A DNA stretch of 64,000 nucleotides from IMGVR_UViG_3300020380_000001:242501-306500, one strand, 5' to 3'. Shown: positions 1,039-61,203, counted from the stretch's first letter. A program made the numbers and translations. Notes: generated by a model from the letters alone, not told the origin.

Positions 1039-1342
1039 TGCTTTCCCCTTTGTAACGCCATACAACACGCGTATCGCGGTCATACACTGCGTCTTTTGTT
1101 TTTAAAACTACGTTATTACCATCACGCACAGCAACACCATCGGCAACTTCTCCAGAGCTAGAGATCACTTCAATCTCACTATCGTCTAAGGGAATTGCAA
1201 ATGGGAAGGTATCGTAGGCTGCGGTAAAAGAACTGATTGCTTGCATGGATCGCGCTCCGGTATAAAAATCACTGAATACGCGCCGACTTACGACGGCGTC
1301 GTAAACAAGTCGGTTAATTTGAGTTGATAAGTTGGTCTGCAT
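1028..1342 (-). CDS. hypothetical protein (104 aa)
   Basis: ORF in a tightly packed operon. Confidence 0.65.
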   Translation of the reverse strand: MQTNLSTQINRLVYDAVVSRRVFSDFYTGARSMQAISSFTAAYDTFPFAIPLDDSEIEVISSSGEVADGVAVRDGNNVVLKTKDAVYDRDTRVVWRYKGESNVS

Positions 1343-1691
1343 AGTTGCGGTAGTGCTCGTATGAAGCCTGCATGTTTTCAGCGCCGATGGGGTTCCTGGT
1401 ATGGATCATGATCGGCGGCAGTGTAAGATCAGCGGCAATATACTCTTCACACATGAATTTAAGACAGTCATGCCCAGTGCGCTCCACTGTACGGCCGTGC
1501 CCCTCTTTAAAATCCTGTATATCGTGGTCAAAGCTATAAACGCACTCTTCCTCTGACTGCACTACATCAAGAACAGCGTCTACGAATTCATCATACGTGC
1601 GCACTACTGTCCAATCAACGTCTTGCCATAATGAAACCCACACTACGTCAGCAACATTGCGTTCGTCGTCTAAGAATATGCCTTTACGCAT
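1314..1691 (-). CDS. cyclic-phosphate-processing receiver-like (cREC) domain protein
   Basis: Motifs IFLDDER, VVRTYDEF, SFDHDI, TG.DC, IHTRNP.GA.NM, typical of this stand-alone phage receiver family. Confidence 0.75.
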   Translation of the reverse strand: MRKGIFLDDERNVADVVWVSLWQDVDWTVVRTYDEFVDAVLDVVQSEEECVYSFDHDIQDFKEGHGRTVERTGHDCLKFMCEEYIAADLTLPPIMIHTRNPIGAENMQASYEHYRNYADQLINSN

Positions 1692-1798: not shown

Positions 1799-1823
1799 AA
1801 AAAAGGGGCAGTGTGCCCCTTTC
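1799..1823 (-). terminator. intrinsic terminator after clpA
   Basis: Minus strand AAAGGGGCA-CAC-TGCCCCTTT followed by more T, right after the clpA stop. Confidence 0.85.
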
Positions 1824-1825
1824 AA

Positions 1826-4081
1826 TTATTCTGCGCTGGCTTCTTCTTGCTTGGCGCGCTGTGCTTTGCGATCTAGCGTTACGTTAACCACTAGTTCGTT
1901 ATTAGCAACTTCTAAACGTACAATGCCACCTTCAGTCAACTTACCATACAAGACTTCCTTAGCAATTGGCTTGCGGACCGCAGTCTTAAACAAGCGCTTA
2001 AGAGGACGGGCTCCGTACTTGTCGTCAATCCCGTTGTCACGCAACCAACGCGTAGCGTCAGGTGTTACGGATACTTGGATATTCTTAGTACTCAAGTCTT
2101 GATTTAACTCAGTAATGTACGTCTTGAGGATTCGGTTAATACTAACCTCGTCAAGCGGTGCAAACACATGAACATCATCAACACGGTTAATCAGTTCCGG
2201 CTTAAAGAAGCGTTTCACTTCCGCGTCAATTTCCGATGCCATGTTTGCGCTGCCAGCTGCAAAGCCTATACGACTGCCGCTCGCTTTTGCTGCGCCAGGG
2301 TTACCAGTATAAAAGATAACGGTATTGGAGAAGTCTGCGGCTACGCCTGACGACGACGTAAGTTTGCCGTGATCGTGTATCTGTAAGAATAAATCATATA
2401 CGCTTCGGTGCGCTTTTTCAGATTCATCCATCAGTATTACACAAACTGGGTTTTCAGATACTTCCGTAACCAACTTACCATTCTTATAACGACCTTCACC
2501 GTGACCCTTGTAGCCAGGAGGTGCGCCAATCAGTAACGCGTCTGAGTGCTCAGCTGAATACTCACTCATATCATAGCGCAGTAACGGCACGCCCCATTCT
2601 TCCGCAAGTACTTTCACCAAGTGTGTTTTACCAGTACCTGTGATACCAGCAATAATACCACCGTAAATAGGACCTTCGGAATTGTCAAGCCCAGCTTTGC
2701 GCGTTTCAATAGCTTCAACTACCGTGTCAATAACATCGTCGTGTCCAAACACACGATCCTTAATACGGGCAGCAAGCGTCGACATACTGTCGCTGTCGTT
2801 CGCTGTTAAGTCTTTTTCAGGAATGCCGGTAGTCAAACTTAGTGCGCGTGTGATGTTTTCATCGTTTACTTCGTCTTGTCCTTTAATCTTAGCGTTAATC
2901 ATCGCTAAATCAAGTAGGTCAAAACTTCTGTCCGGGTTGTGCTTTTGCTGCACATATTTGGTAGCCAAATCAACCAGTTTCGGTAAGTCTGCCATATTAA
3001 ACGACACGTTATGGAAGTCTTCGTACGAGAACAGGCTCTGTGCAAGTATACGCACAGTTTCATCACGCGATGGTTCAGGCACATCAACTAACGCAAAGCG
3101 GCGCACAAGTGCTCTATCACTTTCAATTTGTTCGTAATACTCAGCGTTAGTAGTAGCGCCGATTACTTTAATTTCACCGTTTGCTAGTTTAGGCTTAAGC
3201 ATGTTGCCCAAGTCAAGCGCTGAATCTTTAGTTTGTCCAGCTGACATTGCGGAGTGCATCTCGTCAATAAACAAGATAACTTTGTCCTTAGAACACAGCT
3301 CGTCAATAATTGACTTAATACGTTCTTCAGCATCACCGCGGAACTTAGTACCTGCCATCAGGGCAGCAACATCAAGTGAATAAATTTCGTAGTCTTTTAG
3401 TGAATCCGGGATTTCGCCGTCTACAATTCGTTTAGCTAGGCCTTCAACAATTGCTGTTTTACCAACACCGGCTTCACCTGTCAAAATTGCGTTTGACTTT
3501 TTGCGGCGTCCCAGTACATGTACTAGTTGATCAATAACATCGTCGCGCCCAACAAGCGGATCAATTTTCTCAGCTTGTTCGGTTAAGTTTACACAGTATG
3601 TGCCTAAAGGATCAGTTACGTTTGAACCAGTACCAGCGCCAGATTGAAGAGCAGGCTCTAGGATTTCTAAAATCTTTTCACGTGTAATGCCGTGCTTTTT
3701 AAGATATGCTGCCGAGTGCGAGCGCTCTTCGGTAACCATCATTAATACTAGCGACACAAGTGTCAAATCAGAATTGCCTGAAATTGCGTCTTGTGCTGAT
3801 GCACGACGGATAAGTTCAATTAAGCGCTTGGATTCTTTGGGTTCAATGTCAGTGCCAGTCCATGGTGAACGTAGCGACTCACTTGACAAATAAGTTTCAA
3901 CATCAGTGATAAGGCCGTTAAGCGTGCCTTTACAGCGCGTAACTAAATCAGTGAATGTTTTTTCTTGTGTAAGGGATAAGAGCAAATGCTCGGTAAGTAG
4001 GTATTCGTGATAGCGGCTAACCGCCTCGTTTGTAGCGCGTTCCATAACACGCTTGATGAACTGTAAGTCTTTATCAGCCAT
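1826..4081 (-). CDS. clpA: ATP-dependent Clp protease ATP-binding subunit ClpA
   Basis: Clp_N repeat ([13 protein letters not shown]); D1 Walker A GEAGVGKT and Walker B LFIDEMH; D2 GITGTGKT and LMDESEKAH; ClpP-docking IGF loop (SRIGF); GARPLKR sensor; 751 aa with no ClpB M-domain. Confidence 0.93.
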
Positions 4082-4106
4082 ATTTTGCTCCTTGTGTTTA
4101 AACTAT

Positions 4107-4496
4107 TTATTCACCCGATTGCGAATTATTCTGTATTTGTTGCTCATATGCTTTTATCACAGCTTGCTGGTCCTTAATATAACGTAATAAGTCAGCGGTG
4201 TTATACGACAGATTTTCATAGTCCTTTGCGCTTAACACAAAGTACGCTTGATCGTCAGTCATATTGTCAGTTAAGTCAACCATAATAGCCCGGTTGGCAA
4301 CTCTGAATTCGACTGCGGCCATATTAACTGGCTCAGGTCTGCCGAACGTGCCATATATAGGGCATATAGCGTCACTGACGTCCACAGTCTGCGTCTGTTC
4401 CTCATCCGTTAAAGTACAAGCCGGCGTCGTAAGAATAATTCCTACGGTTATACCGAGCACGATAATAGACTTCACACCGTTATTCAGTTTCTTCAT
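4107..4496 (-). CDS. o-spanin (outer-membrane lipoprotein, Rz1/PseT.2-like)
   Basis: Signal peptide with lipobox-like ILTTPA|C; C-terminal YENLSYN..DLLRYIKDQ..VI..YE; overlaps the i-spanin end. Confidence 0.75.
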   Translation of the reverse strand: MKKLNNGVKSIIVLGITVGIILTTPACTLTDEEQTQTVDVSDAICPIYGTFGRPEPVNMAAVEFRVANRAIMVDLTDNMTDDQAYFVLSAKDYENLSYNTADLLRYIKDQQAVIKAYEQQIQNNSQSGE

Positions 4497-4929
4497 CGAT
4501 TTTAGTCACTTCTTCAATGTCAGTACCCAGCTTAGCTATGGCTCGATTTACTCGAGTTTCTATTAAGCCCGGCTTTTTGCTGGCTAGATATTCAAGGTCA
4601 TGTTTGCGCAACACGTCTTTGATCTTATTCTGTTCAGCTACGTTTTCGTTATACATCTCACGTAGCTCAGAATGTTGTTTCAACAGTTGCTCAACTTTGG
4701 ATGCCTGAATCTCAAGCCGTTTGACTAAGTTTTCGTTCTTATTTGTAACATTAGTGACTTCGGTTGTCAAGGTATTAACTTCTTTTTGTAACTCAGTGTT
4801 ATCTTCAATTACAGAAGTTAAGTACGAATAGCCAAGGTACACGGCAAACAGAACACCCGCAAAGGCGGCAAGTACGGCTATTGTACCCCAAGTCTTTTTA
4901 GATCCTAATGCGGCGAGTCCTGCTAACAT
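4480..4929 (-). CDS. i-spanin (inner-membrane, Rz/PseT.3-like)
   Basis: N-terminal TM helix, long coiled coil, KKPGLIETRVN motif as in T4-type i-spanins; directly upstream of a lipoprotein gene. Confidence 0.78.
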   Translation of the reverse strand: MLAGLAALGSKKTWGTIAVLAAFAGVLFAVYLGYSYLTSVIEDNTELQKEVNTLTTEVTNVTNKNENLVKRLEIQASKVEQLLKQHSELREMYNENVAEQNKIKDVLRKHDLEYLASKKPGLIETRVNRAIAKLGTDIEEVTKIDEETE

Positions 4930-4930
4930 G

Positions 4931-5665
4931 TTATCCGTTCCTTGTTACTTTAAGACAGTGGTTGTCATCATTAACCACTAATATATGTGAATCACTAGTA
5001 CCGAATACAGAGTAACTGGCACCTAGCGAGCGCTCTAAGAATACTATATCAGTGCCGCTTGAAAACGGCGATACTTGACTATGAAAGCCTTTAAAGTCGC
5101 CTTCGTCAACAACACGATAAGAACTACCTTCCAACGAGAATGTAGACTTCTGCGTATCTGTGCGACTTGCGGCTTTAGCAAGAAACTTGGCTATTGCATC
5201 TTGTCCTTTATTGGCCAAGTACTTTTTGTGAGTCATGTACTTCTTAGGATCAAGAGGCAAGTCAGCATGCGGGCAGCCTGCGCGGTAACGCTTAACTTCA
5301 CCTGTCATATAAAACCTAAGACTCCATTTCATCTTATCAGTCATATTTTCAATGTCAGCGATCATCTCGTCAAAGTTTTTCCAAAAGTCACGATCACGTC
5401 TATATTCAACGTGCACTTTCCACATGTTGTTGGTATCGCTAAGCTCAGTGAACTCTGTATCAATCGTATCATACGGTGACATTTCAATAAACATAGCAAA
5501 GTCACGAGCGGCAGCTTCGTCTATTACATTAAACGTCACTACTACCACTTCTTCAGGTGTCCCCGACTTAGGCTTAAAGAAATCAACTAGAATGATCGGA
5601 TCAACCATGTGCTCTAGTTGATGGCGTCTAAACCTTTCGTTTAACTGTCTTTTATTACGCTTCAT
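4931..5665 (-). CDS. jumbo-phage hypothetical protein (likely start MKRNKRQLNE)
   Basis: ORF track 4931..5761; in-frame ATG at 5665 overlaps the upstream stop. Confidence 0.75.
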   Translation of the reverse strand: MKRNKRQLNERFRRHQLEHMVDPIILVDFFKPKSGTPEEVVVVTFNVIDEAAARDFAMFIEMSPYDTIDTEFTELSDTNNMWKVHVEYRRDRDFWKNFDEMIADIENMTDKMKWSLRFYMTGEVKRYRAGCPHADLPLDPKKYMTHKKYLANKGQDAIAKFLAKAASRTDTQKSTFSLEGSSYRVVDEGDFKGFHSQVSPFSSGTDIVFLERSLGASYSVFGTSDSHILVVNDDNHCLKVTRNG

Positions 5666-6200
5666 CGTCGCCTTCATCCTGGTTTGTTTCTGGGGCATCA
5701 TCTGTGTCGTCTCCACCAAATATGTCGTCACTATCGTCGATTTTCTCATCTCGATAATCAACCCCGCTTAGCGCGGTAGACAGATTCAAGTAATCAGTAA
5801 TGTTGCTTGCAATTAGACGTTTGGGGAATTTCAAATCAACTACTGAAACACGGTAAAGCTCGCTTTTAATTGGCGCGGTTGGATTATCGTCGAACTCTTC
5901 AGCAGTCGGTACGCCTGTCATATTGAAAGCTTCGTTACGCAGGGTATACTTAATACCGAACTTCTCTAAGCGCGGCAAGCCTTTTACATCAGGTGGTCTG
6001 GACTTGGGGTACATGATAGACACGTCAACCCAGTACTCTGTGATATCAGGCCCTGCTATAATTTCGCCTTCTTCCCAGTTCTCATATGCATAGACGCCGG
6101 TCTCGCCAAGGATACTCTCGCACTCTAGCAAGTAATCCATAGCAGTAATGTCGCCCATAATATACTGGTAGTTTTGTTGTAATGAATCAAATTCTATCAT
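5655..6200 (-). CDS. jumbo-phage hypothetical protein, acidic C-terminus
   Basis: 181-aa ORF, first gene after a CTAAATA late motif, divergent from phoH. Confidence 0.8.
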   Translation of the reverse strand: MIEFDSLQQNYQYIMGDITAMDYLLECESILGETGVYAYENWEEGEIIAGPDITEYWVDVSIMYPKSRPPDVKGLPRLEKFGIKYTLRNEAFNMTGVPTAEEFDDNPTAPIKSELYRVSVVDLKFPKRLIASNITDYLNLSTALSGVDYRDEKIDDSDDIFGGDDTDDAPETNQDEGDDEA

Positions 6201-6225
6201 TATATCGCCTGTTTAGTCTTTACCA

Positions 6226-6232
6226 TATTTAG
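6226..6232 (-). promoter_or_regulatory. late promoter motif CTAAATA (hyp-hyp-spanins-clpA unit)
   Basis: TATTTAG on + strand, 26 nt upstream of ATG 6200; same motif recurs before structural genes. Confidence 0.7.
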
Positions 6233-6281
6233 TACTTGGGCAATTGTAATGAAAGATTAATCTACAAATTGAATTCTGGCC

Positions 6282-6309
6282 GTAAATACTTTTGAACACT
6301 ACGGTGTTC
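6282..6309 (+). promoter_or_regulatory. late-type motif GTAAATA followed by a cUACGg hairpin, upstream of phoH
   Basis: GTAAATA at 6282-6288; GAACAC-TACG-GTGTTC at 6294-6309. Confidence 0.5.
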
Positions 6310-6425
6310 ACGGAACCCCGGATGATAGTAAATTCATATACTTACAATCCATGCAACACGCCAAAGACTCTTGTTACTAGAACGAAGGGTCACCACTTCT
6401 TTAACCCTAATAAAGGAACTATTTT

Positions 6426-7181
6426 ATGGCAAAACAGGCTAAGTACGACCAGAATTCAACCAAGCACGGTAAACATAACCAAAAAGCAACTGTTTACGAT
6501 ATAAACTCACTTACTAAGAAGAGCCCGCCGTCTACTAAAGACGTGCGCCCGATTCCTAGAAACGTTGCTCAGGAAGAATACGTACAATACCTCAATAACG
6601 AAAGCGTTCGTTTAGTTTTCGGCACAGGGCCTGCAGGTACCGGTAAAACACTACTGGCTACACTGAAGGCAATTCAACTATTTTTAGAAGGCCATGTTAG
6701 TAAAATTATCATTACTCGTCCCGCAGTAGCAGTAGACGGAGAATCGCACGGATTTCTACCCGGTGACATATTCGCTAAGCTAGAGCCATGGACAAAACCT
6801 ATCCTGGATGTATTTTTAAAGTTCTTTTCACATTCCCAGATAGCAGATATGATCGACACCGATATGTTAGAAATTTGCCCGCTTGGTTTCATGCGCGGCA
6901 GAACATTCGATAATGCGGTGCTTTTACTTGACGAAGCACAAAACTCAACTGACGTACAGATGAAAATGTTCTTAACCCGTATAGGCACCGGCACGCGTGC
7001 ATTTATTACTGGTGACTTAGAACAAAGTGACCGAGAAAAAGGCATCAACGGCTTAGAGGACTTTGCCCGTCGAGCTAATGACCGTGCGCCGGACAGTATC
7101 AAGTTCGTTAATTTCCAACGCAAAGATGTGGAGCGTGATGCGATTGTAGAGACTGTATTGGCACTTTACGAAGACGAATAA
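6426..7181 (+). CDS. phoH: PhoH-family ATPase
   Basis: GPAGTGKT, RPAV, GFLPG, FMRGRTF, LLDEAQN, TRIG, GDLEQSD motifs; SD AAGGA. Confidence 0.95.
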   Translation: MAKQAKYDQNSTKHGKHNQKATVYDINSLTKKSPPSTKDVRPIPRNVAQEEYVQYLNNESVRLVFGTGPAGTGKTLLATLKAIQLFLEGHVSKIIITRPAVAVDGESHGFLPGDIFAKLEPWTKPILDVFLKFFSHSQIADMIDTDMLEICPLGFMRGRTFDNAVLLLDEAQNSTDVQMKMFLTRIGTGTRAFITGDLEQSDREKGINGLEDFARRANDRAPDSIKFVNFQRKDVERDAIVETVLALYEDE

Positions 7182-7190
7182 GGTGATATG

Positions 7191-7217
7191 AAAAAGCCGC
7201 TTAAACGCGGCTTTTTT
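7191..7217. terminator. bidirectional intrinsic terminator
   Basis: AAAAAGCCGC-TTAAAC-GCGGCTTTTTT between convergent genes. Confidence 0.9.
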
Positions 7218-7231
7218 GTCTTTGGATTTTA

Positions 7232-8727: not shown

Positions 8728-9666
8728 TTACGCGCCTTCTACTGCGAGTTCTAACTCAACCAAAGTTGCTGCTAGATTAAGTTCAGGGTCAGCACATAGC
8801 GGCGCCTTAGCCATACCGTTGCGTAGTGCAACAACACAGTTTCTTTCAATATTAGGATCACCGTTAGACCAGAAGTTGATGTTGTTATACAAAAACGTCC
8901 AGATCTCATCGTACTCGTTAGGTTGTGCCTTAGCGCACATAAGTTTACGGCCTTCCACATATTGCTTTTCACGGAAGTACGCCACAGCGTGCACGCGCCA
9001 GTCTTCTGTATCGCCACCTTTAGATGACGGTGATTCAAGTTTGCCGTTAATTGTGTTCTGCTGCAATAAGTTCAAACACTTACGCAAGTCAGGATAGGTT
9101 GCGTCAATAACTTCCCCTAGTGCTTCAGGGTCAATATCAACTTGCTCTTCAAGCAGTACGCGCACCGCACGTTCTTCAAACTGCGGCTTATCTGGTTTTG
9201 AGATTTCGTACTCTTGCAAACGTGACTTAAGCGCGGGAATAATACGATTCGGGTAGTTACACGTCATTACAAAACGACACTGATGCGCATAAGTTTCCAT
9301 TAAGTTACGAAGCGTAGCTTGTGCCTCAGGACTTAAGTGATCAGCCTCGTCAAGAAGAATATAACTGAACGCACTCATAAAAGGCATGTTAGACGCAAAG
9401 CCTTCAACAGTTGTTCTGATATACTCAACACCATTTTTCAATGACGCGTTGATAATCTTGATGTTGGACTTGTCGACCTCAAGCATGTTAAACAACACCT
9501 TAGCCAGTGTCGTTTTACCAGTGCCCGGGCCGCCGTGGAATAACAAGTGCGGAATAGTTTTTTCTTGCACCCATTGATTGATTTTGTTTTTAAGACTTTC
9601 GTCTTTAAGAACATATCCGTCAAGAGTGGCAGGACGGTACTTTTCAACCCAAAGATCAGTTGCCAT
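8728..9666 (-). CDS. sliding-clamp loader large subunit (T4 gp44 / RFC small subunit-like)
   Basis: LWVEKYRP, HLLFHGGPGTGKTT, INAS, LLDEAD, TCNYP.RII..L.SR. Confidence 0.93.
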   Translation of the reverse strand: MATDLWVEKYRPATLDGYVLKDESLKNKINQWVQEKTIPHLLFHGGPGTGKTTLAKVLFNMLEVDKSNIKIINASLKNGVEYIRTTVEGFASNMPFMSAFSYILLDEADHLSPEAQATLRNLMETYAHQCRFVMTCNYPNRIIPALKSRLQEYEISKPDKPQFEERAVRVLLEEQVDIDPEALGEVIDATYPDLRKCLNLLQQNTINGKLESPSSKGGDTEDWRVHAVAYFREKQYVEGRKLMCAKAQPNEYDEIWTFLYNNINFWSNGDPNIERNCVVALRNGMAKAPLCADPELNLAATLVELELAVEGA

Positions 9667-14270: not shown

Positions 14271-14837
14271 CTATTTTAAGTCGTTAATAGACTTGACTAC
14301 TTCGTCTATTAAGCCATACTCTTTGGCTTCAGCTGCTGACATAAAGTTGTCACGATCAGTGTCAGCTTCAATCTTATCGAGCGGCTGTTTTGTAAAGTCC
14401 GCAAGCATTCTGTTTAGTTTATCTTTAATAGACAGAATCTCTTTAGCGTGTATCTCAAAGTCAGATGCCTGGCCTTGGAATCCGCCCAGTGGCTGGTGAA
14501 TCATTACACGGCAATTAGGCAGCGCGTAACGAACGTCGCCTGCCGCTAATAAGAACGAACCCATTGAACAGCACTGCCCGGTACCAACAGTAATAATACG
14601 AGAGTTCACAAACTTCATCGTATCATACATTGATAATCCCGCAGTTACAGCACCGCCGGGTGAATTAACGTATACGTAAATGTCGGCTTCCATCTTGGAT
14701 TCAAGATAAAGGATCTGCGCATTTACAGACTCAGCCATGTGATCATTTACAGGACCGTTAATCAGTATAATGCGGTCTTCCAAAAGTCGTGAAGCCAAAT
14801 CAACTACACGGTTATTCTCTATGATCATCGGAATCAT
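14271..14837 (-). CDS. clpP: ATP-dependent Clp protease proteolytic subunit ClpP
   Basis: SRLL.DRII, YVNSPGG, catalytic Ser in CCSMGSFLL, His in MIHQP, Asp in [17 protein letters not shown]. Confidence 0.97.
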
Positions 14838-14846
14838 ATATTTTCC

Positions 14847-15623
14847 TTATTGTGGTAAAACTTTGTCAATAGTAGCTAGTAAATCCGGATCAAATGCTAG
14901 CTTGTTTTCTGGATTGAGTGAATCCATATTCTCAATACACCATAACCAGTAATCAGCCGGAACTTCTGAGAACGGTTTGCCTTTGTGTTTTCCAAAAGGC
15001 ACTGTTTGGTATATTGTCGGTTCTTGTGCGTACTGAACAACGTCAGCGAGCATATCAGGACCGGGCTCTATAATACCGCGTACGAGCATCGTTTCTACCA
15101 TGACCTCTAGTAATCTGGCAGTGAAATATGCATCGTGCGGGGCTCTGTGAAGCTGCAAATTATCTAATTCAGGGCGGTCTTCCGACAGGTCGAAGTGATA
15201 TCGCATGTCAGGCAAATTGTATGATTCCAACTCAGGGAACAACTTGCGGCCTAGACGCAGAGTACAAATAAATTGTTCTTCAGGGATATTTGCGCCATAT
15301 GCGTCTGATACAAGGAATTCATACTTTGCATTGTGCGCAACAATAAAACGATCTCTGATAGAGTCAAAAAACTCATTACGCTTGTAAATGAACTCTTCGC
15401 GCCCTGCGAGCATGCGCGGGGTAATCAAGCACACTGATTGGGTTTTAACAGGAAGGGCACCTGCTACGTTGAATAGCTCGCCTTCCATCGACCACGTATT
15501 GCCATCAAAACTAGAAGTACCAGTTTCAATAACTTCAACATCATACGGGTCTAGCCCGGTGGTCTCATAGTCTATCACGACTAATGATTTGTAGAAATTC
15601 TTAACAAATAAATTCATTGACAT
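14847..15623 (-). CDS. DEDDh 3'-5' exonuclease, exodeoxyribonuclease X-like
   Basis: IDYETTG, VAHNAKYE, ICT, HRAPHDA; C-terminal VPFGKHKG.PFSEVP.DY..W domain. Confidence 0.88.
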   Translation of the reverse strand: MSMNLFVKNFYKSLVVIDYETTGLDPYDVEVIETGTSSFDGNTWSMEGELFNVAGALPVKTQSVCLITPRMLAGREEFIYKRNEFFDSIRDRFIVAHNAKYEFLVSDAYGANIPEEQFICTLRLGRKLFPELESYNLPDMRYHFDLSEDRPELDNLQLHRAPHDAYFTARLLEVMVETMLVRGIIEPGPDMLADVVQYAQEPTIYQTVPFGKHKGKPFSEVPADYWLWCIENMDSLNPENKLAFDPDLLATIDKVLPQ

Positions 15624-15850
15624 ATTCTCGTGTGTAGTCTGGATATATAGGACTCCGACTTGGCAGACAATGTCTCATAACTATAGCGCGGATTAAAAGG
15701 ATCTTCAACTGCGTAGTAATCAACAATTTCTTGCACTTGTTGATCAAAGCTGTCTAGTTGGGTTAAGACATGGTGGTTTACTGACCCGCGGCCGAGGTCG
15801 TCAAATACGGTTAAGTCTAAGCGATCGTCAAACTCGATATCGTCGTCCAT
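15614..15850 (-). CDS. hypothetical acidic protein (78 aa)
   Basis: First gene of the exoX-clpP unit, overlapping the exoX start. Confidence 0.65.
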   Translation of the reverse strand: MDDDIEFDDRLDLTVFDDLGRGSVNHHVLTQLDSFDQQVQEIVDYYAVEDPFNPRYSYETLSAKSESYISRLHTRICQ

Positions 15851-15885: not shown

Positions 15886-15927
15886 GCACATAATGATTAT
15901 GTGTGAATTTTTTTAATCATTATGTGC
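15886..15927. promoter_or_regulatory. nested inverted repeats (operator-like) upstream of the clpP operon
   Basis: GCACATAATGATTA-14 nt-TAATCATTATGTGC plus internal CACATAAT-G-ATTATGTG. Confidence 0.6.
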
Positions 15928-15974
15928 AACATACACAAAAAGTGGTCAACGGTCAAACTGTTTTTAAAAACTTT

Positions 15975-16787: not shown

Positions 16788-16910
16788 TCAAACAGCCAGA
16801 ACGGCAAGTACAATAACAGTCGTCACGACTAGTAAAGTACCGTTCAATACAGCTTCTTCCCAACGTGTTACCTGTGAAAAATTAAACTTATTCACAAGAT
16901 TTTTAAGCAT
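16788..16910 (-). CDS. 40-aa small membrane protein translationally coupled to clpS
   Basis: Not in the ORF track. TAATG overlap with the clpS stop; MLKNLVNKFNFSQVTRWEEAVLNGTLLVVTTVIVLAVLAV*. Confidence 0.6.
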   Translation of the reverse strand: MLKNLVNKFNFSQVTRWEEAVLNGTLLVVTTVIVLAVLAV

Positions 16911-17221
16911 TATTCTTCCTCAATAGATACCTTTAATTTTGCCCCATTGAGTTTGTTAGCACTGTCAACTTCATTTACTTTAGTCTCAGCGATCTCGTAG
17001 GGGTAAGAGCCCACAACGCCGCGTTCACCGTTGTGCACAGTAAACATAAAGTTTATAGCTTTTTCTTGGGAATAGCCGAAAACGTTAACTAAGATGAATA
17101 TGACATAGTCCATATGCGTTACTTCGTCATTATGCATGACAACTACCACATCTTTAGGAATCTCAAAATCTTCGTTAGTGTCGATATCGGTTTTTTGAAT
17201 AGTATCCGTTTGTTGAGCCAT
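16910..17221 (-). CDS. clpS: ATP-dependent Clp protease adaptor ClpS
   Basis: VVMHNDEVTHMDYVI.IL..VF, A..FM..VH..G..VVG.YPYEIAETKV, L...IE; SD GAGGT. Confidence 0.93.
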   Translation of the reverse strand: MAQQTDTIQKTDIDTNEDFEIPKDVVVVMHNDEVTHMDYVIFILVNVFGYSQEKAINFMFTVHNGERGVVGSYPYEIAETKVNEVDSANKLNGAKLKVSIEEE

Positions 17222-17269: not shown

Positions 17270-17328
17270 TAGAGCGTGATATTTTCATATCACGCTCTAA
17301 CTATACTAAATTCACCAAGCATTGTCTA
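17270..17328 (-). promoter_or_regulatory. sigma70 promoter of clpS with a 30-bp palindrome over the predicted start site
   Basis: TAGACA-17 nt-TATAGT, then TAGAGCGTGATAT-GAAA-ATATCACGCTCTA (17270-17299). Confidence 0.6.
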
Positions 17329-17442
17329 GACTTTACTTTCACGTCGTTGCTATCTTTATTTACGTAATTCAGTTACAGAATTGAGTATTTTTGTACAAAT
17401 TTAAAACTATATTTTCTAATATTATGTATTAGAATAACTTAT

Positions 17443-18246
17443 TCAACCGTAATTTAATCGTAACATGGCAAGCTCGGATTCACTAAGCTCAGTGTGTTGC
17501 GCAAATTCAAGGACATCTTTGCACCAGAGACCATTATAATGAAATTCAGCGATGTTATCGCCGCTAGCGGATTCAACTACTACTGCGGGGGCGTGCGTAT
17601 GATGCATTCTCCCAAAACGATGGTACACCAGGCTTTCTTTACAGTCTACTGTACCCAGTGAATTGACGTATATTGTGCCGCCGTATTGTACTAAAGAGGG
17701 GATGCCGTTGAAAGAATGCGGGCGCCAGCGAACAGACGAAGAACGATTCTTGTTATAAGGGTGCCTACTGTCCATCCCGTTTGTGTCGGCTATGAAAGTA
17801 GATAACCTTTCATAATAAACTTCAGGTTCACCCGGGGCAACATTAAAGACGCTATGTTCGATTTTTTTGAACTCGCTGCCCAGTTCGTCGGTGTATAATT
17901 CCACAGTAGCATTTTTGACAGGTCCTGCATATTCTTCAATTACGGCAGCTTTGCCGCCACCTCTTACAAATTTAGATCCGTCAAACCACGAGTGGGTGAC
18001 AATGCTGTATTCTTTTGACTGATTCGTGTACTTGGTAATAAACGCAGGTTCGTCGTTCTCTGACTTCACTTCGCCTGACTTGTCACGTATCCAGGTTTCT
18101 AGCACTATCTTTTCATTTATTTTCTGGGGCCTTTTTGCATCGTCGTCCATAAAAATGCTTGGTGCTATACCTAAAGTTTGAACAATGTGTTTGTTATCTG
18201 ATTTAGTATACTCACGTATACTGTAAGAGTAGTTATCCATACTCAT
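17443..18246 (-). CDS. hypothetical protein with a C-terminal G.lH....PAV motif
   Basis: 267 aa; YHRFGRMHHTHAPAVV...EFHYNG resembles a repeat unit common in large-virus proteins. Confidence 0.75.
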   Translation of the reverse strand: MSMDNYSYSIREYTKSDNKHIVQTLGIAPSIFMDDDAKRPQKINEKIVLETWIRDKSGEVKSENDEPAFITKYTNQSKEYSIVTHSWFDGSKFVRGGGKAAVIEEYAGPVKNATVELYTDELGSEFKKIEHSVFNVAPGEPEVYYERLSTFIADTNGMDSRHPYNKNRSSSVRWRPHSFNGIPSLVQYGGTIYVNSLGTVDCKESLVYHRFGRMHHTHAPAVVVESASGDNIAEFHYNGLWCKDVLEFAQHTELSESELAMLRLNYG

Positions 18247-18271
18247 ACCTGATGTGTAGCTTTTTGAGTCT

Positions 18272-18309
18272 ATTATACTGACGAACTACGTTTTCAGCAA
18301 GACTAAATA
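18272..18309. promoter_or_regulatory. back-to-back promoters: sigma70 (minus) and late CTAAATA (plus)
   Basis: Minus TTGCTG-17 nt-TATAAT (18272-18300); plus CTAAATA 18303-18309, 30 nt before ATG 18339. Confidence 0.65.
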
Positions 18310-18338
18310 TTATAAAATCCACAAACACGAGTCCGTCC

Positions 18339-19967
18339 ATGAAAGATATTGTATATTACTCAAAGTCGTTGTCTGCCTTAGAATCATTTAAAAAACAATG
18401 GCCCCATGCCATAATAGTAAACACGTCTGATATGGCGGAGGCAGTGCGAGTTTTAAAAAATACTTTTACTTCTGTAAGATACCTTATCGCGGAGGGTGAC
18501 GAAGACTTCCTACAGTACGTGCCTGCGGGCAGTGATGCTGACTTAATCCACACCTTTAATAACTCTCTTATCGTGCCTTGGCACACTGAAGTCACAAGCG
18601 ACTTTCATGGTTTCGGCATAGCTGTTTCAGCTAACATGAATCCAGAGTATGTCGAATTTGAAGGATTACAAAACATAACAGAGCCTGTTGATTACGTGCC
18701 GACCGATGCTATTACTGTGGTATACGGTACCGAGGAACGTTTTTATAGTGAGGATGTAATACACATACCATCGTTGGGCGAGGATGCATTGTGGCCATCA
18801 CTTGCCACTCAACCAAAGTCATGGATCCATTTTCAACATGTGTCGGTTGCTCAATCTGATACTACCTTGCGCAGTAAACTTGACCCCAACTCTATACACA
18901 GACGCGGGTCTAATTACTGCTTCACACTGCACAAGGACTTGATCGACACCAATCGTAAGTTTAAATTGGCACACTTAAAAGTTAAGGACCATCATGCGCC
19001 TAATACAGTAGTGAACCGAGCTTCGTGGCCTGTTTATCAAGATATCAATAAACTAGAAGCCAGCAATCACACCGAAGCACTCTTGGTGCCGCTCGGCTCT
19101 ACTGTCAACGACACTGCGTTAGAGTATGTACCGGAGATATACGAGCACGAAGCATCCGTCTTAATGAGGGAAACTGATTCACGTGGTTTTAGCATCGGCG
19201 GAGGCGGCGTCAAACTAGTCAACAAAGGCACTAATAAGTCAGTATACAGCAAAGCAATCGGCTCTTCCATTGCTGAGTTTGATATCATATTTTTATCAAA
19301 CAACGAGTCGTTCGCTGACGATCACTACGCTCAATTGAAAGAACGGTTCCCGCGTGCTAAACGAGTAAACGGCGTGAAGGGAATAGGCAAAGCACACCAG
19401 GTATGTGCTGAAGTCGCCAACACTGATATGTTCTGGGTAGTAGACGCCGACAGCGTGATTGTCCCTGATTTCAAGTTTGATTTCATTCCGCCCCGTAGCG
19501 CATGGCACAAGGTGTACGTTTTCAGGAGTAAGAACCCCGTTAACAATTTAATATACGGACACGGCGGTGTCAAGCTTTTTCCAAGGAACAGAGTACTGAG
19601 CGCGGATACTGATGTTGTAGACTTCACTACCAGTTTAGGCGACTTTAGCGCTGTCAGTGTACTAAGCAACATTAACGCATACGATAAAAGCGGCTGGCAT
19701 GTATGGCGTACCGCTGTACGAGAGGCGGCAAAGTTACAGGACCAAGTAAAGCACAATCCGGAAGACCTCGTATCGGCGCGTCGTCTAGAACAATGGTTAA
19801 CAGTAGGTGAAGGCAAGTACGGTAACATTTCATTAAAAGGCGCTCGTTTTGGCGCTGACCTATCACTAAATACGATTAGCATATCACCGATAAACAATGA
19901 CGAGTGGCTACGAGGATATTATGATGAGGTTCATGAATATGGAGATGACGTTTCCGAATTGGAGTGA
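18339..19967 (+). CDS. glycosyltransferase-like protein (GT-A fold, C-terminal domain)
   Basis: FDIIFLS..E..AD, RV.GVKGI..AH..CA, MFWVVDAD (DxD), N.L.YGHGGVKL, WRTA.RE..KL; N-terminal half looks like a degenerate repeat. Confidence 0.7.
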   Translation: MKDIVYYSKSLSALESFKKQWPHAIIVNTSDMAEAVRVLKNTFTSVRYLIAEGDEDFLQYVPAGSDADLIHTFNNSLIVPWHTEVTSDFHGFGIAVSANMNPEYVEFEGLQNITEPVDYVPTDAITVVYGTEERFYSEDVIHIPSLGEDALWPSLATQPKSWIHFQHVSVAQSDTTLRSKLDPNSIHRRGSNYCFTLHKDLIDTNRKFKLAHLKVKDHHAPNTVVNRASWPVYQDINKLEASNHTEALLVPLGSTVNDTALEYVPEIYEHEASVLMRETDSRGFSIGGGGVKLVNKGTNKSVYSKAIGSSIAEFDIIFLSNNESFADDHYAQLKERFPRAKRVNGVKGIGKAHQVCAEVANTDMFWVVDADSVIVPDFKFDFIPPRSAWHKVYVFRSKNPVNNLIYGHGGVKLFPRNRVLSADTDVVDFTTSLGDFSAVSVLSNINAYDKSGWHVWRTAVREAAKLQDQVKHNPEDLVSARRLEQWLTVGEGKYGNISLKGARFGADLSLNTISISPINNDEWLRGYYDEVHEYGDDVSELE

Positions 19968-38887: not shown

Positions 38888-41800
38888 TTAAAGATATTTA
38901 TAAGTGATAGGATTAGCTGCGCCTGAACTCTTAACAAACGACTCTACACCGCTGTCAAATTCAAAGCTATCGCCTGTATAGAACACGTCAGGATCAACAT
39001 ATTGTGTATCAGACACAAACTGTATTCTGGACCCGGGTGCATGGTTTGCTATACTTGTGCTTAGCTGGCCTCGCTTCAATCCGTAGAATGTTGTGTGAGT
39101 GCCATCGTAAGCAATATTTGAGTAAACAACCATCTCGCCGTTTATCCAAAAACGCCCTGTATTACCTTGATTCGTGTAATCTCCTTCAACTTTTACGCTG
39201 TATTTATTACTTGGTAATTCACTGGAAGACACAGTCGCAGACGCGTTGCCCATTACAAATACTTGGTGATCACTTGTCTCATCAAGCAAATAACGGTACG
39301 CGTAGTTTGCGTCACTAAACGATGATTCACTCACAATTACTAACCAGCTATTGATAGGAATTGTAGTGTTATCAAACGTTATACTCGCATCTGTGTCCCA
39401 CGGCGTGCTATCCCATCCATGCACGTACTCGCCGTCAACAAACTCGTCCCAAGGCTCCGAGCGCACGTTGTTGAAGAAGTCAGTTAACTCTTCTACTATC
39501 CACTCAGTTGTAACGCCAGGCGACACGTTGTAACGAGGTACTTTTCTAGCAACATAAACCCGTGATGTAGAGCTATCAACATCAGCAAGAGTTAGGTTGT
39601 CACTTGTCACTTTTACATACTCAATTGTATGAGAAGGGTTAGTTTCAACCGTAACAACTAGCGCGTCGTGTACCTCAATTGGCGCTATGCCAGACATAAG
39701 ATCTTCACGCGTCATAGGGTTAGCAAATGAACGAGATTCACTTGGACGAACGTCATAAATTTCAACAATGTCGCCTTCATGTAAAGGCACAATTACCCGC
39801 AGAACTTTTTCAGTCGCATCATAATTGAACATATTAATTTCACGTCCATTTACGAACACAAACGGCCCCATTACGTCTACAACTTGGGTGGTTACGTCAA
39901 ATTCAACCACAAACGTTTGGTTCATCTCCGGCTTATATTCAATGTACATATATCCGGCATCGCTTGCGCTCATTAAGCCTGGATCGTTCTCGTCAAAAGT
40001 ACCAAACTCGCCAGAATCAATTGCGTAAACGCGACCTGAGTTAACATCATTAACACGATCAAAAGACGCCTCGTCATACGTCAAGCTAGTCACACTACCG
40101 TCGTTAGGCGGTATATCACTTACGCTTTCTGACCAAACTCGGTTAATGTTTATCGTAGTCGTAGTAACAATGTCTTCAAGCCCAGTTATTTCAACCAAGC
40201 TATCATCATCACGGTTAACCGTATAAGCAGACGAGAAGTTTCTTATCTTAGTTCTATACGGTTTCACATCTTCAATATACGAGCCCAGTAACTCAATGTT
40301 ATTTGGTGTTGTAATAGCCGGTGTGTCGAACGTGTTGCCTGTTTGGCGCACGCTTACATACGAAGTCTTAAACAACCAATCAACATGATCCTGTTCGCTC
40401 ATTACATAAACGAATGCAGTGAATACGGCACTGTTCATGTATTTTTCAGTGTCGCCAACAAATATGTACTCACGCAATAGATCCATAAGGAGTCTAAGTT
40501 CAAGTCGTAGTTGGTGGCTATATTTGCCAGTCCATGCTCTTGGCAAAATTTCCACTGTTTCGTTTTGTACAGCAACAATCTCAAAACTACCAGTTGAGTT
40601 AACTTCGTAGATAGTGTAATTTGCATTGACTACTGGTTGAACTCTTACCTGGTCCCCAGTTACGAGCCTAGATTTCAGGGCACTTAGTTCACTCGGCGAC
40701 TTTACTAAACGAGTAGGGTTAACATTCTCAGCGCTATACCCGTCAGCATACCATACACCCCATTGCCATAAAGTACCCTCTTGCTCTGCTAAGAATAAGT
40801 TCCATTCAGGATAATCAGACCTAATACGTAGGTTCTTAATGTTTTCATTAATATCCTGGAATATAACCTTACGGGCAGCAAATACGTCTTTAAACCAGCT
40901 TTGGCGAGGCGTATTAGAGTTACCGTATTTTTCGTAATCGCCAAGGGAAGGATCAGGAACCATCAAGTATGAATCCGTGCTCTTGGCACCAGTTACTGCT
41001 TCTATTTGAGTTGGTAAATCAGGCAACGCACTGGACGTATATGATCCAACAAACTGCGACGGTACGTCTGGACTTGTTTCATAAACAAGGCGCACATACG
41101 AGTCAACCGGATGCTCTACTACGTCAGTGTCTTGATAACCCCTGTCTAACCCAATTAGTTTTATTTTCCCGTATTTAGATTCGTTGCCATCGGCGTCAAC
41201 AATTACGCGGGTATTGTAGTAAATGCGCTCTCCGTTTAGCTCTATAACACCACGAGATTCAGGGAATCGGGTGTCGTATCTGTCAAGTAAAAGACTAGTG
41301 ACGTTTCCGGTTGTTAGCTTGGATTCAGTGTAAGCGAAACCGTCTTCACGTAAATTGTAAAGACCTTGTTTAACCTCGTCCCATCCAGTCGGCTTAGTTA
41401 TACCAGTAAACGAGTCAATGAACTTCTCCCAGTGCGCTTCTGGCAACTTAGTATCCGACCCGTCTTCGTTTATAATCACCCACTCGGTGTGATCTTGGTT
41501 ATGTGTTTCTTTATACTTGTAGTTTATTTGGAACGCGGTGTTTCTATTGCGTGCTACACTAGACACGTTAGCGAAAACAAAACTATTCCCGTCAACTGCG
41601 TAACTAGATGTTTGGTATGAAATCGCAAATGTTTCGTTTGGCTCAAGCACACTATCAAACTCAAGACCTCCCTTAACTACACGCCAGTTATGTCCATCAC
41701 CATAGAACTTACCGTCGCGCAATCTAAACACGCGCACGTCACTGATCCAGTCTGCACCCAAATCAATAAAGTTGCCAGTCTCATAATCAGTTGTAACCTC

Positions 41801-44800
41801 TACATAACGGTGACGTCTATCAACGTCATTTTTATGATCGTTAATAGGCGAGAACCAAATATAGTTCTGCTTCGTAGGCGTTAATATCATACTCGCAACT
41901 TGGAACACGCTCGCTGTTCTGTTAGGTAACGAACCCGCAATTGTTGTTTTGCCTGCTACCCAGAAATAATACTTGATTACAGACGCTTTAGTTGCAGAAT
42001 TGTACACTTCACGCTGAGTGTATTCGTTTACGTTGCGCGGTGTTCCTGATCCGCTGTACTGACTAGGCGGAACGTCACTTTCAATCCACTCATAAACAGC
42101 CGCTTCAGAACCAGGGAATACTGCGCCCCAGTAATCACGGCGTTCATAAATACTGCCTTGCTCGTAATACAAGTAAGCCATTTTAGACGTGTCCCACCAA
42201 ACTTGACCAATGTTGTCTTGGTCAAATAAGTTGTTTAAGTCAACATTCTCAAATACATCTGAGTTAGTGTATTTGGCTGGGTCAGACGTCATACGCCACG
42301 TTACATTCTGTTCGACTACCGTTGGTAGCAAACCTTTAAAAGGATCGTATACAGGTAACAAGAAGAGCGTTTCTGCGGTCTTTTCGTCATATAAAAACGC
42401 TTGATCAAATAAATGTGTGTTTACTAACGTTTCTCGTTGTCTTACTGTGGTTTGTACCTCGTCATTTACCACGGCTTGTACTTCGTACGGCACAAACACG
42501 TTGCCTTGGAACTGATAAACAGCCCAATCGTTCTCGCCTGCTGCGTGATCCACCCATGCTAATTCGCCCTCTAAGAAAGGACTGTTAGCTGAATACACTT
42601 CCATGTCATTGCGTGTGTCAAATCTACAAGATTCGAAACAAATAACACGCATAGTAAGGACTGGCGCGAACTCGTCTAGCGCATCAATATCAGCGTTTTC
42701 CAACAACACAGTGTCAGCAGTTGTTAAGTCAGTGCCTTCTAAGTCACGATACAGTGCATATCTACGAGCATAGCTGGTCTCTTTCTCGCTCGTTTCATCT
42801 AGTACCGGCTTAATAAGTACTTGTTTTTCTGCAATATTGCGACGTGGTGACTCTGTGTCTAAGCTAGGGTCAACTGTCACTAAACGGCTATAAAGCACGA
42901 ACGCTTCGCTCGTTACTTCACGCGCAAAAACGTCATACAAGTCAACATCAGTTTCAAGATACCATGTGTTGCCGGACTTGAATACTGCTGAGTTTTGTTG
43001 AGATAATAACTCAGTGGCGCGCAGAACGTCCCAGTCGTCTTTTGCATTACGTGCTAGCCATAGGGTATCACGAGATTCAACACTCTCGTTACCTTCACTA
43101 TCGTACGTGTAATTTACGCTAGGAATAGCAGGTTCACTATTATAATCAAAGACTTGTTCAACATTAAATGCAGTGTAGTTTACATCGCGGATATGCACAT
43201 AACCAGCAGTCGGCATGTCGTAATCAATTACGTCAGTTTTAGGGAACAAATCTACCGGGCTAGTGTTCACCGGGCGTCGGTGCCAGCTATCAACACTATC
43301 TTGGTCAACTACAATAATATTATCCTTGTCGCTGTCATTATCAGACAAACCTTCAAGGGTAGCAATCATGTCATCTTCCCAAGCAATGTCAGTATCATCC
43401 CAAGCATCAGTGTCAAACCCACCGATGTCGAATGAATCTGAACGAGCAACAATAACAGTAGGTGTCTTGGTATACCCTTCACCCGAGCTAACCAAGGTAA
43501 CATCGCTTATTCTACCATCTTCGCTTAGTTCGCACTTAGCAGTTGCCCACACTATATGTCCCGTATCATCAGGCGCAGGGATTATTCTAATATGCGGCGG
43601 CGTTGCGTAGAACTCTTCTAAGTCAACGATCTCAATAGAATGTACCTTTTTATGGTCAGTTACCGGCGTATCTATCAATACAGCTTGCGGGTCGCTTACT
43701 ACCTTTTCAGACGATAGTAAAATATCAAAACGCTGGGTATTATTGGTTGCGCCAAAGTCGCCTACCTTAACAGCCCATTCTTCGTTTATAGTGATATTTT
43801 CTGACGCGTCTGTATCCAGGGCACGCAGGATCTTGTCACTACTTGTAACTGTTCCTTTTTCTTGGATCATGCCACGATAAAACTCGTACTGTGCGTTGTC
43901 TCCTAGACCAAGCGTAGTCAAGTAATCCTTGCTATCGTAACCTATCATGTGTCGTGCTGCGTTAGTGATGCCAGATCTATCTAACACGCTTTCACTGTTA
44001 TGGTAATCACGGATACTTGACGTATTGTTTTCCAAGTTAGTTATAAGAGACCCTGATTCAGTTATAATATAACCAGGCGCTTCTTTCTTACCGCTCCAGC
44101 CGAATGATCTAAATCCGTCAAATATGATGCGTTTCTTTCTTTGCTGCAATAAGCCATCAAACATAACGTCATCAAATACGGTTTTGTTATCAAACACAAC
44201 CACATGCTCGGAATCTTTAACACCAAATCGAGCAAAGAAAATACCCGCGTCCTCGCTTGCTGTTTCAAGTGAAATATGCTTTTCAGTACGGCCGAACACA
44301 ATAGCGCTGCGACTAAGTGGCAGGCCAGCTTTGTTTAGTACAACAAATTCACTTGACTTGTCGCTTACTACCGGAACCGGGTAGCCTTGGTCAAATGTTA
44401 CTGACACTTTTGAGCTTATCGGACTCAGTGCCAATAGCGAGTTATTTTCCCAGTTAGATGCTATCCAGTTTAGTAACTGTTTAGAGCTCTGAACAAAGTC
44501 TCTACGCGCTGAAGTTACCGGGTCACGTTCTTCAAAGTCAAAGCCAATATCATTTAAGTAAGCACCATAGCCTATCATGAAGTCTACCAAATCCTGTACA
44601 GACGTAAACTCGTGACCATAGTTTATGCTTAGTTCGCTTGTTGAATCACGATCCGGATATACTTGCGCAGACACAGCGTTAATCTTAGGCAACTCACTCA
44701 ATGCAGTCCAAAGAGTAGGATCAAATACTTGGCTATAGTGTGTGGATTTAGCACGGTAATAAGTGCCGTTCCTTTCTATAATTGAACCAATGTTGTATTG

Positions 44801-49402: not shown

Positions 49403-49405
49403 AAA

Positions 49406-56107: not shown

Positions 56108-56108
56108 A

Positions 56109-59155: not shown

Positions 59156-59956
59156 ATGTCAAACACCGATAATTCGCACTACCTGAAAAACCGCGAAATG
59201 ACAGCGGAAATCAACAAGTGCAAATACACTTATTGTCATTTCATTTCACCAGAATACCAGAGATACGAAGGAATTCTCGAGGGTTCGTATAAGGACATTT
59301 TCTCTAAAGCCGTAGACGAGGATGGGGTCGAGTTTCAACCGCATATCGTAAAAGCTGTTAAACGGTACGCTAAAAACAAGCGCAACGAAACAGGCCAAGT
59401 AGTGGCTGTTGAAGATGTTGACTTGAGCGATGTTGTTTTCAGAGTAATGACTGACGAACACATACCTACCGACGAGACAGGCGAGCCCATAAAACTTAAC
59501 TTCCCTGCTTTCAAGCATTACATTGTAACCGACTTAGAAAAGGAAGAGGTTAAAGAAGTGGGTAAGAGCCACCACTCAGACGAAAATACGTTTTCGATGA
59601 CACACGGCAAAACTTCCAATAAACTGGGAGAGATTTACCTACTTATGGTTAATCGCTATGGCGGCCGCTATAATTGGCGCGGGTACTCTTATCTTGATGA
59701 TATGAAAGGCCAAGCACTTACACAATTAGCAAAAGTTGGCTTGATGTTCAACGAAGCTAAGGGCACAGATCATCCAAACCCGTTTGCTTATTACACTACT
59801 ATTATTAAACGTTGTTTTAGTAAAGTAATAAAAGACGAGAAACGAGTGAGCGAGATTCGCGACAGCTTGTTAATGGACGCAGATCGTGACCCAAGTAACG
59901 CTAAGCAACTTGAACTAGAATCAGCTTACCGTAACCGCTATAGTGAGGACGACTAA
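59156..59956 (+). CDS. late-transcription sigma factor, T4 gp55-like
   Basis: HYL.N.E, NWRGYSY.DDMKG.AL, FNE.K..NPFAYYT.II..CF...I..EK; upstream of gp47/gp46 as in T4-like phages. Confidence 0.85.
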   Translation: MSNTDNSHYLKNREMTAEINKCKYTYCHFISPEYQRYEGILEGSYKDIFSKAVDEDGVEFQPHIVKAVKRYAKNKRNETGQVVAVEDVDLSDVVFRVMTDEHIPTDETGEPIKLNFPAFKHYIVTDLEKEEVKEVGKSHHSDENTFSMTHGKTSNKLGEIYLLMVNRYGGRYNWRGYSYLDDMKGQALTQLAKVGLMFNEAKGTDHPNPFAYYTTIIKRCFSKVIKDEKRVSEIRDSLLMDADRDPSNAKQLELESAYRNRYSEDD

Positions 59957-60978: not shown

Positions 60979-60996
60979 CCAGCTCTAGGAGTTACT

Positions 60997-61203
60997 ATGA
61001 GTTGCACACATGAAAGACAAGTTGATCCTGAGTGGGTGACGGAAACATGTAGCTGGACAGGCGAAGAAATTAGTCGCTGGGAGTACCACGAACCAGTTTC
61101 AACCTTTGTTGACGTATCTACTCATTCATATAAATGCACCCAGTGTGGCGAAGTGTTTTATTACTCACAACGCGGGAAACAAATAGAAGAAGGCAAGCTT
61201 TAA
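60997..61203 (+). CDS. small putative zinc-binding protein (68 aa)
   Basis: AGGAG SD; MSCTHE...YKCTQCGE; TAATG-coupled to gp46. Confidence 0.7.
   Translation: MSCTHERQVDPEWVTETCSWTGEEISRWEYHEPVSTFVDVSTHSYKCTQCGEVFYYSQRGKQIEEGKL

Follow-up and report, generated by a model that had tools for sequence, protein, structure and literature searches.

The record IMGVR_UViG_3300020380_000001 is a 306.5-kb IMG/VR virus, an uncultured marine jumbo phage with terminal repeats, and the identical sequence is present in many marine metagenomes. We analysed a window of 64,000 nucleotides (nt), bases 242501-306500 of this record. In the stretch 1799-6232 of the window, a gene for a Clp-type unfoldase, clpA, closes a minus-strand unit headed by a motif of the type found at late promoters of T4-like phages; the genes of an adaptor (clpS) and a peptidase (clpP) lie in separate units. 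All coordinates are window positions unless the genome is stated. The clpA unit contains the following features:

6226-6232, minus strand: CTAAATA late-type promoter motif, context ACTAAATAT; the ATG of the first gene (6200) is 32 nt downstream
5655-6200, minus strand: gene for a virion structural protein of 181 amino acids (aa); phrog_12928, E 1.5e-22
4931-5665, minus strand: gene for a 244-aa protein of a virion-structural family; phrog_13138, E 1.9e-23; 11-nt overlap with the 181-aa gene
4480-4929, minus strand: i-spanin gene; phrog_739 Rz-like spanin, E 4.5e-13; 1-nt gap after the 244-aa gene
4107-4496, minus strand: o-spanin gene; phrog_812, E 5.8e-13; 17-nt overlap with the i-spanin gene
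4104-4110, minus strand: second late-type motif, ATAAATA, overlapping the o-spanin stop codon; the clpA ATG is 29 nt downstream
1826-4081, minus strand: clpA, 751 aa, assigned with Pfam; 25-nt gap after the o-spanin gene
1801-1823, minus strand: intrinsic terminator, GGGGCA-CAC-TGCCCC plus a T run; -16.2 kcal/mol, z = -3.3

The initial annotation had described CTAAATA at 6226-6232 followed by two hypothetical genes, the two spanin genes and clpA, with gaps of 25 nt or less and no hairpin before a terminator at 1799-1823. The coordinates and gene order agree with this description, the gaps along the unit being -11, 1, -17 and 25 nt, and so does a hairpin scan of the minus strand between 6300 and 1700, in which the terminator at 1823-1801 was the sole T-tailed hairpin. 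The first two genes, however, are not hypothetical but belong to families of virion structural proteins. The 181-aa protein is the ortholog of PA5oct EST35_0295 (E 3e-21), a virion protein by mass spectrometry, and the 244-aa protein that of EST35_0296 (E 3e-24).

The next two genes have the organization of a two-component spanin, with overlapping genes, a type II membrane protein with a coiled coil, and a predicted outer-membrane lipoprotein. An N-terminal membrane helix and a coiled coil were read from the i-spanin sequence; the o-spanin has a signal peptide ending in ..LTTPAC, with an atypical lipobox (TPAC), and its lipoprotein status is predicted. The pair resembles PseT.3/PseT.2 of T4 in its overlapping genes, in combining a membrane helix and coiled-coil partner with a small lipoprotein-like partner, and in its PHROG spanin families; it differs in the non-canonical lipobox of the phage o-spanin. 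At a related locus (L023) whose ClpA is 46% identical, homologous spanins lie 30 nt before clpA: the i-spanin homolog is located upstream of clpA, and the o-spanin homolog shows a weak match to PF26831 (Phage_T4_Spanin). No holin or endolysin gene was found within the stretch 1799-6232. The next gene after the clpA terminator (1314-1691, minus strand) encodes a cREC_REC domain protein (PF20274, cyclic-phosphate processing receiver, E 6e-18) and has its own TG-extended sigma70-like promoter at 1748-1721.

The motif at the head of the unit behaves as a promoter-like signal throughout the genome. CTAAATA has 63 copies on both strands, compared to about 70 by our estimate from base composition, and is thus not in excess overall; 35 of these copies, however, fall into oriented upstream intergenic DNA, which amounts to 19 kb, and are 19-fold enriched there. 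For the core TAAATA, 75 of 176 copies lie in such DNA (15-fold). The copies are mostly positioned 26-46 nt before start codons. Their logo consists of [A/G][C]TAAATA, four free bases and an A-rich patch at the position expected of a T4-type start ([A/G]C-TAAATA-N4-AAA); there is no conserved -35 element, and the base preceding TAAATA is loose, being C in about half of the sites. CTAAATA at 6232-6226 fits this logo, as do the flanks of the second motif before clpA. Inside genes, TAAATA is depleted about 3-fold relative to codon shuffles, both in the sense (26 vs 77 +/- 8) and in the antisense orientation (35 vs 107 +/- 9). Upstream enrichment, fixed spacing and avoidance within genes together are the behaviour expected of a short, self-sufficient promoter element.

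Annotated genes led by the motif include those for the tail sheath, tail tube, baseplate hub, baseplate wedge, fibre-like proteins, head decoration and several virion proteins, together with a protease family and a MazG-like pyrophosphatase. Annotated unit-first genes that were sampled and had no TAAATA at -20 to -60 are those for a deoxynucleoside monophosphate (dNMP) kinase, rIIA, NAMPT and an RNA-binding protein, several of them with sigma70-like promoters. CTAAATA is also the late promoter consensus reported for the T4-like phage Aeh1 (PMC1524935).

A candidate reader of the motif is encoded in the same window:

59156-59956, plus strand: gene for a gp55-family late sigma factor, 266 aa; phrog_12791, E 6e-66 to 9e-65; phrog_234 (the family of T4), E 2.5e-18 to 7e-17

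This gene is adjacent to gp47-like (SbcD) and gp46-like (SbcC) genes (59156-62993, plus strand), as in T4. A search of the phage for a second sigma70-family sigma factor found none. The Rak2/PA5oct-like jumbo phages, to which the phage is related, are group 2.2 of Iyer et al., which has no RNA polymerase of its own and encodes sigma factors and a gp33-like factor (PMC7824862). The likeness to T4 late transcription comprises the sigma gene beside the gp47/gp46-like genes and an A/T-rich, -10-only motif similar to TATAAATA, about 30 nt before starts, that has no -35 element and leads virion operons; the core of the motif is identical to that of the Aeh1 late motif. Compared to the T4 factor (185 aa), the phage sigma is longer and belongs to a separate PHROG family.

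Between the o-spanin gene and clpA, the second motif may provide an additional start. Among the 197 same-strand junctions whose gap does not exceed 30 nt, 10 have TAAATA at -60 to -19, where 0.85 would be expected (P = 3e-8). As judged from this sequence signal, clpA probably has its own late-type promoter besides read-through from 6232. The initial annotation had taken clpA for a late gene co-transcribed with the spanins. This is consistent with the position of clpA in a TAAATA-led unit that also contains virion and spanin genes and has no terminator ahead of clpA; the motif at -29 adds a further route, which strengthens the assignment of clpA to the late class and weakens its dependence on co-transcription with the spanins. 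Upstream of the unit, no sigma70-like match of at least 9/12 was found on the minus strand of the intergenic region 6201-6425, and a two-way terminator at 7188-7219 blocks read-in. A related-locus search recovered two relatives (L006 and L007) whose ClpA protein is 98% identical, with about 94% identity in DNA. Both motifs are kept there, as is the stem of the terminator at 1823-1801, of which the loop is altered; these relatives are too close for footprinting, and conservation at such divergence is uninformative.

The promoters upstream of clpS and clpP are of different types. The clpS unit has these features:

17357-17363, minus strand: late-type motif GTAAATA; the clpS ATG is 142 nt downstream
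17300-17328, minus strand: sigma70-like promoter TAGACA-17-TATAGT before clpS; 10/12 positions match
17270-17299, minus strand: perfect 13-bp palindrome abutting the -10 of the clpS promoter; -20.4 kcal/mol
16910-17221, minus strand: clpS, 103 aa; PF02617, E 4e-26, 89 bits

Genome-wide, the sigma70-like class is enriched upstream of genes, with 32 of 127 matches (at least 10/12), the clpS site included, in oriented upstream intergenic DNA. The host sigma70 promoter proposed for clpS in the initial annotation is thus present at 17328-17300, but the control of clpS would not be purely of this type, in view of the GTAAATA 142 nt upstream and an RNA contig, described below, that reaches 17327. Downstream, the clpS stop codon overlaps (ATAATG) with a 40-codon open reading frame (ORF; 16790-16912, minus strand) whose product would be small and hydrophobic; a T-tailed hairpin at about 16741-16712 comes next, and the ORF would accordingly be co-transcribed with clpS.

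The clpP unit is located further downstream on the same strand:

15928-15956, minus strand: weak sigma70-like match TTGACC-17-TATGTT before the unit; 9/12
14847-15850, minus strand: a 78-aa gene and the gene for a 258-aa DnaQ-like exonuclease; phrog_192 DNA polymerase exonuclease subunit, E 5.5e-32; 9-nt gap to clpP
14271-14837, minus strand: clpP, 188 aa, third gene of the unit; PF00574, E 8e-73, 241.7 bits
14224-14252, minus strand: strong terminator after clpP, a two-way hairpin found in the hairpin scan

That clpP ends a unit is supported by the terminator at 14252-14224. The claim that this unit is separate holds less well: there is just the weak 9/12 match at its head, and no terminator was found between it and an upstream unit led by GTAAATA (16702-16696), so transcripts from that motif could read into the clpP unit. 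Perfect 13-bp palindromes of unrelated sequence directly follow both the clpS promoter (17270-17299) and the promoter region of the clpP unit (15887-15927, -17.0 kcal/mol) on the minus strand; possible roles are those of operators, attenuators or stems that stabilise the 5' end. We rejected a hairpin right after the -10 as a general mark of early promoters, because just about 4 of 33 sigma70-like sites have one.

The three Clp proteins look functional from their sequences. ClpA contains the Pfam domains Clp_N, AAA, AAA_lid_9, AAA_2 and ClpB_D2-small, that is, an N-domain and two AAA+ modules without a middle domain, and its alignment to E. coli ClpA is continuous (18-734, E 1e-142), whereas those to ClpB and ClpC are split in two. 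Both modules have their Walker A and B motifs (GEAGVGKT 202, FIDEMH 271, GITGTGKT 479 and LMDESEKA 550), together with the pore loops KFRG (246) and GYKG (523) and, in RIGFAAG (604), the IGF docking loop at residues 605-607; we take these to correspond to the motifs of E. coli ClpA. ClpP has the Ser-His-Asp triad, with Ser in CCSMG, His in MIHQP and Asp in DTDRDN; its N-terminal loop, compared by eye, is presumably about 4 residues shorter than that of E. coli ClpP. ClpS, which also matched ClpS entries in the PDB, keeps the ND[D/E].T.M..V pocket of Caulobacter ClpS (NDE..T.M in the phage, with E at the equivalent of D36), the VH and the AETKV contact helix. A predicted complex of ClpS with residues 1-150 of ClpA scored 0.87, while the highest-scoring of three controls reached 0.00; 51 of 78 solved complexes attained this mark, as did 2 of 108 mismatched pairs. 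At least 84% of contacts were shared between the runs, with a partner pLDDT (predicted local distance difference test) of at least 81. Because a similar complex has already been solved, the model shows likeness rather than binding.

In domain order, Walker motifs, pore loops, IGF/IGL loop, ClpP triad, ClpS pocket and ClpA contacts, and in the predicted interface, the phage proteins thus resemble E. coli ClpAPS. In E. coli, clpS and clpA lie in one operon; the phage genes are instead distributed over three separate units, about 3 kb and about 10 kb apart, with promoters of different types, and phage ClpA is just ~38-40% identical to its closest bacterial homologs. No second Clp/Hsp100 ATPase, such as ClpX, was found in the genome, ClpA being the sole one; ClpP made earlier than ClpA would then have host unfoldases only. 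A 312-aa AAA+ ATPase of unknown type (8728-9666, minus strand; weak AAA_2 match, E 0.001) is not a Clp unfoldase.

Four metatranscriptomes contain contigs, from relatives 90-97% identical to the phage, that cover clpA, clpS and clpP. The o-spanin/clpA junction was bridged by a contig in 4 of 4 runs, and none crossed the terminator at 1801-1823. The bridging contigs and the respected terminator fit the operon model, a single transcript, its strand and its timing being beyond these contigs. On the opposite side of the intergenic region, the contigs may point to a start at another copy of the motif:

6282-6288, plus strand: GTAAATA before phoH (6426-7181), 143 nt upstream of phoH

Contigs on the phoH side began at 6294 and 6297 in two runs, about 6 nt past this GTAAATA, where a T4-type late start would fall. 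Before clpS, a contig of run X20 ended at 17293, the start expected from the sigma70-like promoter, whereas a contig of run X18 reached 17327, beyond the -10 of that promoter, and 17408-18400 was uncovered in the four runs. The contig to 17327 and the silent region suggest that some clpS transcripts start further upstream, consistent with the late-type GTAAATA. For the clpP unit, contigs of runs X17 and X18 ended at 15954, within the sigma70-like match. Coverage gaps coincide with stretches below 90% identity, and the junction contigs, the silent region and the few isolated ends are used here as hints only.

The closest annotated relatives of the phage are PA5oct, Atu_ph07, Vibrio phage 2.275.O and the E. 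coli Asteriusvirus group (Rak2/PA5oct-like jumbo phages). ClpA is 37-42% identical to theirs, and the similarity is at the protein level only; a megablast search of the stretch 1799-6232 against GenBank phages returned no match. The arrangement in PA5oct is similar, with phoH on one strand and, on the opposite strand, the virion protein detected by mass spectrometry, its neighbour, one more gene and ClpA. The divergent pair of phoH and the virion gene is conserved, and the PA5oct counterpart of the gene that opens the clpA unit has ATAAATA 29 nt upstream. In both PA5oct (EST35_0298) and Atu_ph07 (gp292), ClpA lies within the structural module. The difference concerns the genes before clpA: a DnaJ-like gene precedes it in PA5oct and Atu_ph07, a spanin pair here and in L023, and in PA5oct a hairpin and a sigma70-like match are located before the DnaJ-ClpA pair.

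The best explanation overall, which we consider somewhat more probable than not, is that the locus is a late-type unit of a PA5oct/Rak2-like phage, with clpA expressed late only and clpS and clpP expressed earlier and persisting. The -10-only promoter of the T4 late kind (ACTAAATAT) would be read by host RNA polymerase with the gp55-family sigma; the transcript would run through the genes of the two virion proteins and of both spanins into clpA and end at the hairpin 1823-1801, and the ATAAATA situated 29 nt ahead of the clpA start codon would give clpA another promoter of this class. Judged from motifs and gene context, the sole Clp-type unfoldase encoded by the phage is predicted to be late-only. 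clpS and clpP, in separate units with sigma70-like promoters, could start earlier; given the late-type motif of clpS and the possible entry of transcripts into clpP from a TAAATA-led unit, the expression of both probably continues into the late period. The phage would then possess a complete ClpA-ClpP-ClpS N-degron protease only late, and before that phage ClpS and ClpP could work with host unfoldases only. A neat split between early clpS and clpP and late clpA is therefore just partly borne out. The unit would appear to work like a T4/Aeh1 late operon, with ordinary ClpAPS components and with ClpA in a structural module as is typical of the clade.

Several observations weigh against this explanation. 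The RNA contigs are unstranded and come from relatives of 90-97% identity, and numerous contig ends represent assembly breaks, with overlaps of 10-24 nt. A gp45-type clamp gave no match with three profiles (phrog_223, PF09116 and PF02916), although a divergent clamp is possible, and the gp33 candidate, a 90-aa ORF at genome 138041-138313 (plus strand), is a weak phrog_254 match (E 0.0095); both results may set the phage apart from T4, as does the loose base before TAAATA. Iyer et al. reported gp33 orthologs across this phage group (PMC7824862). TAAATA is absent from the spanin/clpA junction of L023, where the spanin-clpA order is nevertheless found, which indicates that the linkage is older than the internal motif. 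TAAATA also heads many small genes of unknown function, the MazG-like gene and the gp33-like candidate itself (ATAAATA at -35), so the class need not be strictly late. These small non-structural genes, the MazG-like gene, the gp33-like candidate, the motifs upstream of clpS and of the unit leading into clpP, and the finding of all three clp genes in the same environmental RNA libraries would also be expected if TAAATA marked a general phage class, middle and late, under which clpA, clpS and clpP would overlap from mid-infection without any switch. In PA5oct, middle and late transcription are indeed hardly separable by RNA-seq, with little distinction between 15 and 25 min (PMC7318152). Every annotated virion operon that was sampled, however, begins with a TAAATA motif, whereas the sampled nucleotide-metabolism and rIIA genes and the gp55-like sigma gene do not have it, and both the motif and the family of the sigma correspond to those of late transcription in T4/Aeh1. 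We therefore regard a general class as rather unlikely.

A further rival is an early promoter inside the spanin genes. Two sigma70-like candidates are present there, TTGACA-17-TACAAA at 4770-4742 and ATAACA-17-TATATT at 4204-4176, and it also counts against a late-only clpA that in three runs RNA coverage breaks off within the i-spanin gene, at 4704-4749, with nothing covered upstream in run X19, which could mark an internal start. But sigma70-like matches across the region of the clpA unit are at the level of shuffled sequence (50 vs 37 +/- 6.5 expected), the candidate at 4770-4742, picked by eye, does not have the conserved final T of the -10 hexamer, and the X17 contig extends upstream to 4749, past the start expected from it. 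The genes upstream of the coverage ends are only 83-88% identical between strains, under the 90% mapping cut, which accounts for the missing coverage. That a sigma70-type promoter of this kind drives clpA early appears very improbable. The remaining alternative leaves the transcriptional interpretation intact but holds that the spanin neighbourhood is functionally meaningless, clpA riding in the structural module of the clade and the spanins being a local insertion; we give it about an even chance. It accords with the DnaJ-like gene, rather than spanins, before clpA in PA5oct and Atu_ph07, with the solitary clpA between tail genes in Vibrio phage 2.275.O, and with the conservation of ClpA in most Rak2-like phages (PMC6102473). 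The recurrence of the spanin-clpA adjacency in L023, at 46% ClpA identity, shows in turn that it is not limited to one strain.

The initial annotation had envisaged a timed switch in proteolysis linked to morphogenesis or lysis, with adaptor and peptidase made earlier and acting with or inhibiting host ClpA/ClpX; such a switch is conjecture. In its boldest form, early ClpS and ClpP would retarget or poison host ClpA/ClpX, and phage ClpA, made only together with virion and lysis proteins, would then form an autonomous N-degron protease for assembly or for the timing of lysis. We regard this as unlikely. A search found no literature on the timing or kinetics of phage Clp genes, and the text of the main PA5oct paper makes no mention of Clp. 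Phage Clp genes and CTAAATA late promoters are already known, ClpA, ClpP and ClpS having been catalogued in jumbo phages; the new element is the prediction of a late-only unfoldase with an earlier adaptor and peptidase. At present the locus is seen as an ordinary late operon with a plausible hypothesis attached. If the unfoldase is made later than the adaptor and peptidase, it would offer a concrete example, open to testing, of a virus that at first borrows a host machine for protein degradation and later replaces it, and the conservation of the block in the cultivable phage PA5oct makes the hypothesis testable.

Some further observations were made in the phage and its relatives. Two giant genes of 3504 aa and 1310 aa follow a gp25-like baseplate wedge gene in one TAAATA-led operon (38888-53338, minus strand). 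The genome region 160000-200000 (L018, L019) contains many small genes, many of them with TAAATA at about -30, and has unusually long gaps of 200-1150 nt between called genes that may contain tRNAs, small RNAs or ORFs of less than 50 aa. Genome 55838-57274 encodes a phrog_850 "RNA-binding protein". In the protein cluster of the 98% identical ClpA (P0001), one source labels the protein as belonging to a Sphingobium sp. metagenome-assembled genome; the longest contig of this cluster, at 519 kb, exceeds the phage genome. These observations may reflect mis-binning or a concatemer assembly, or hint at the host.

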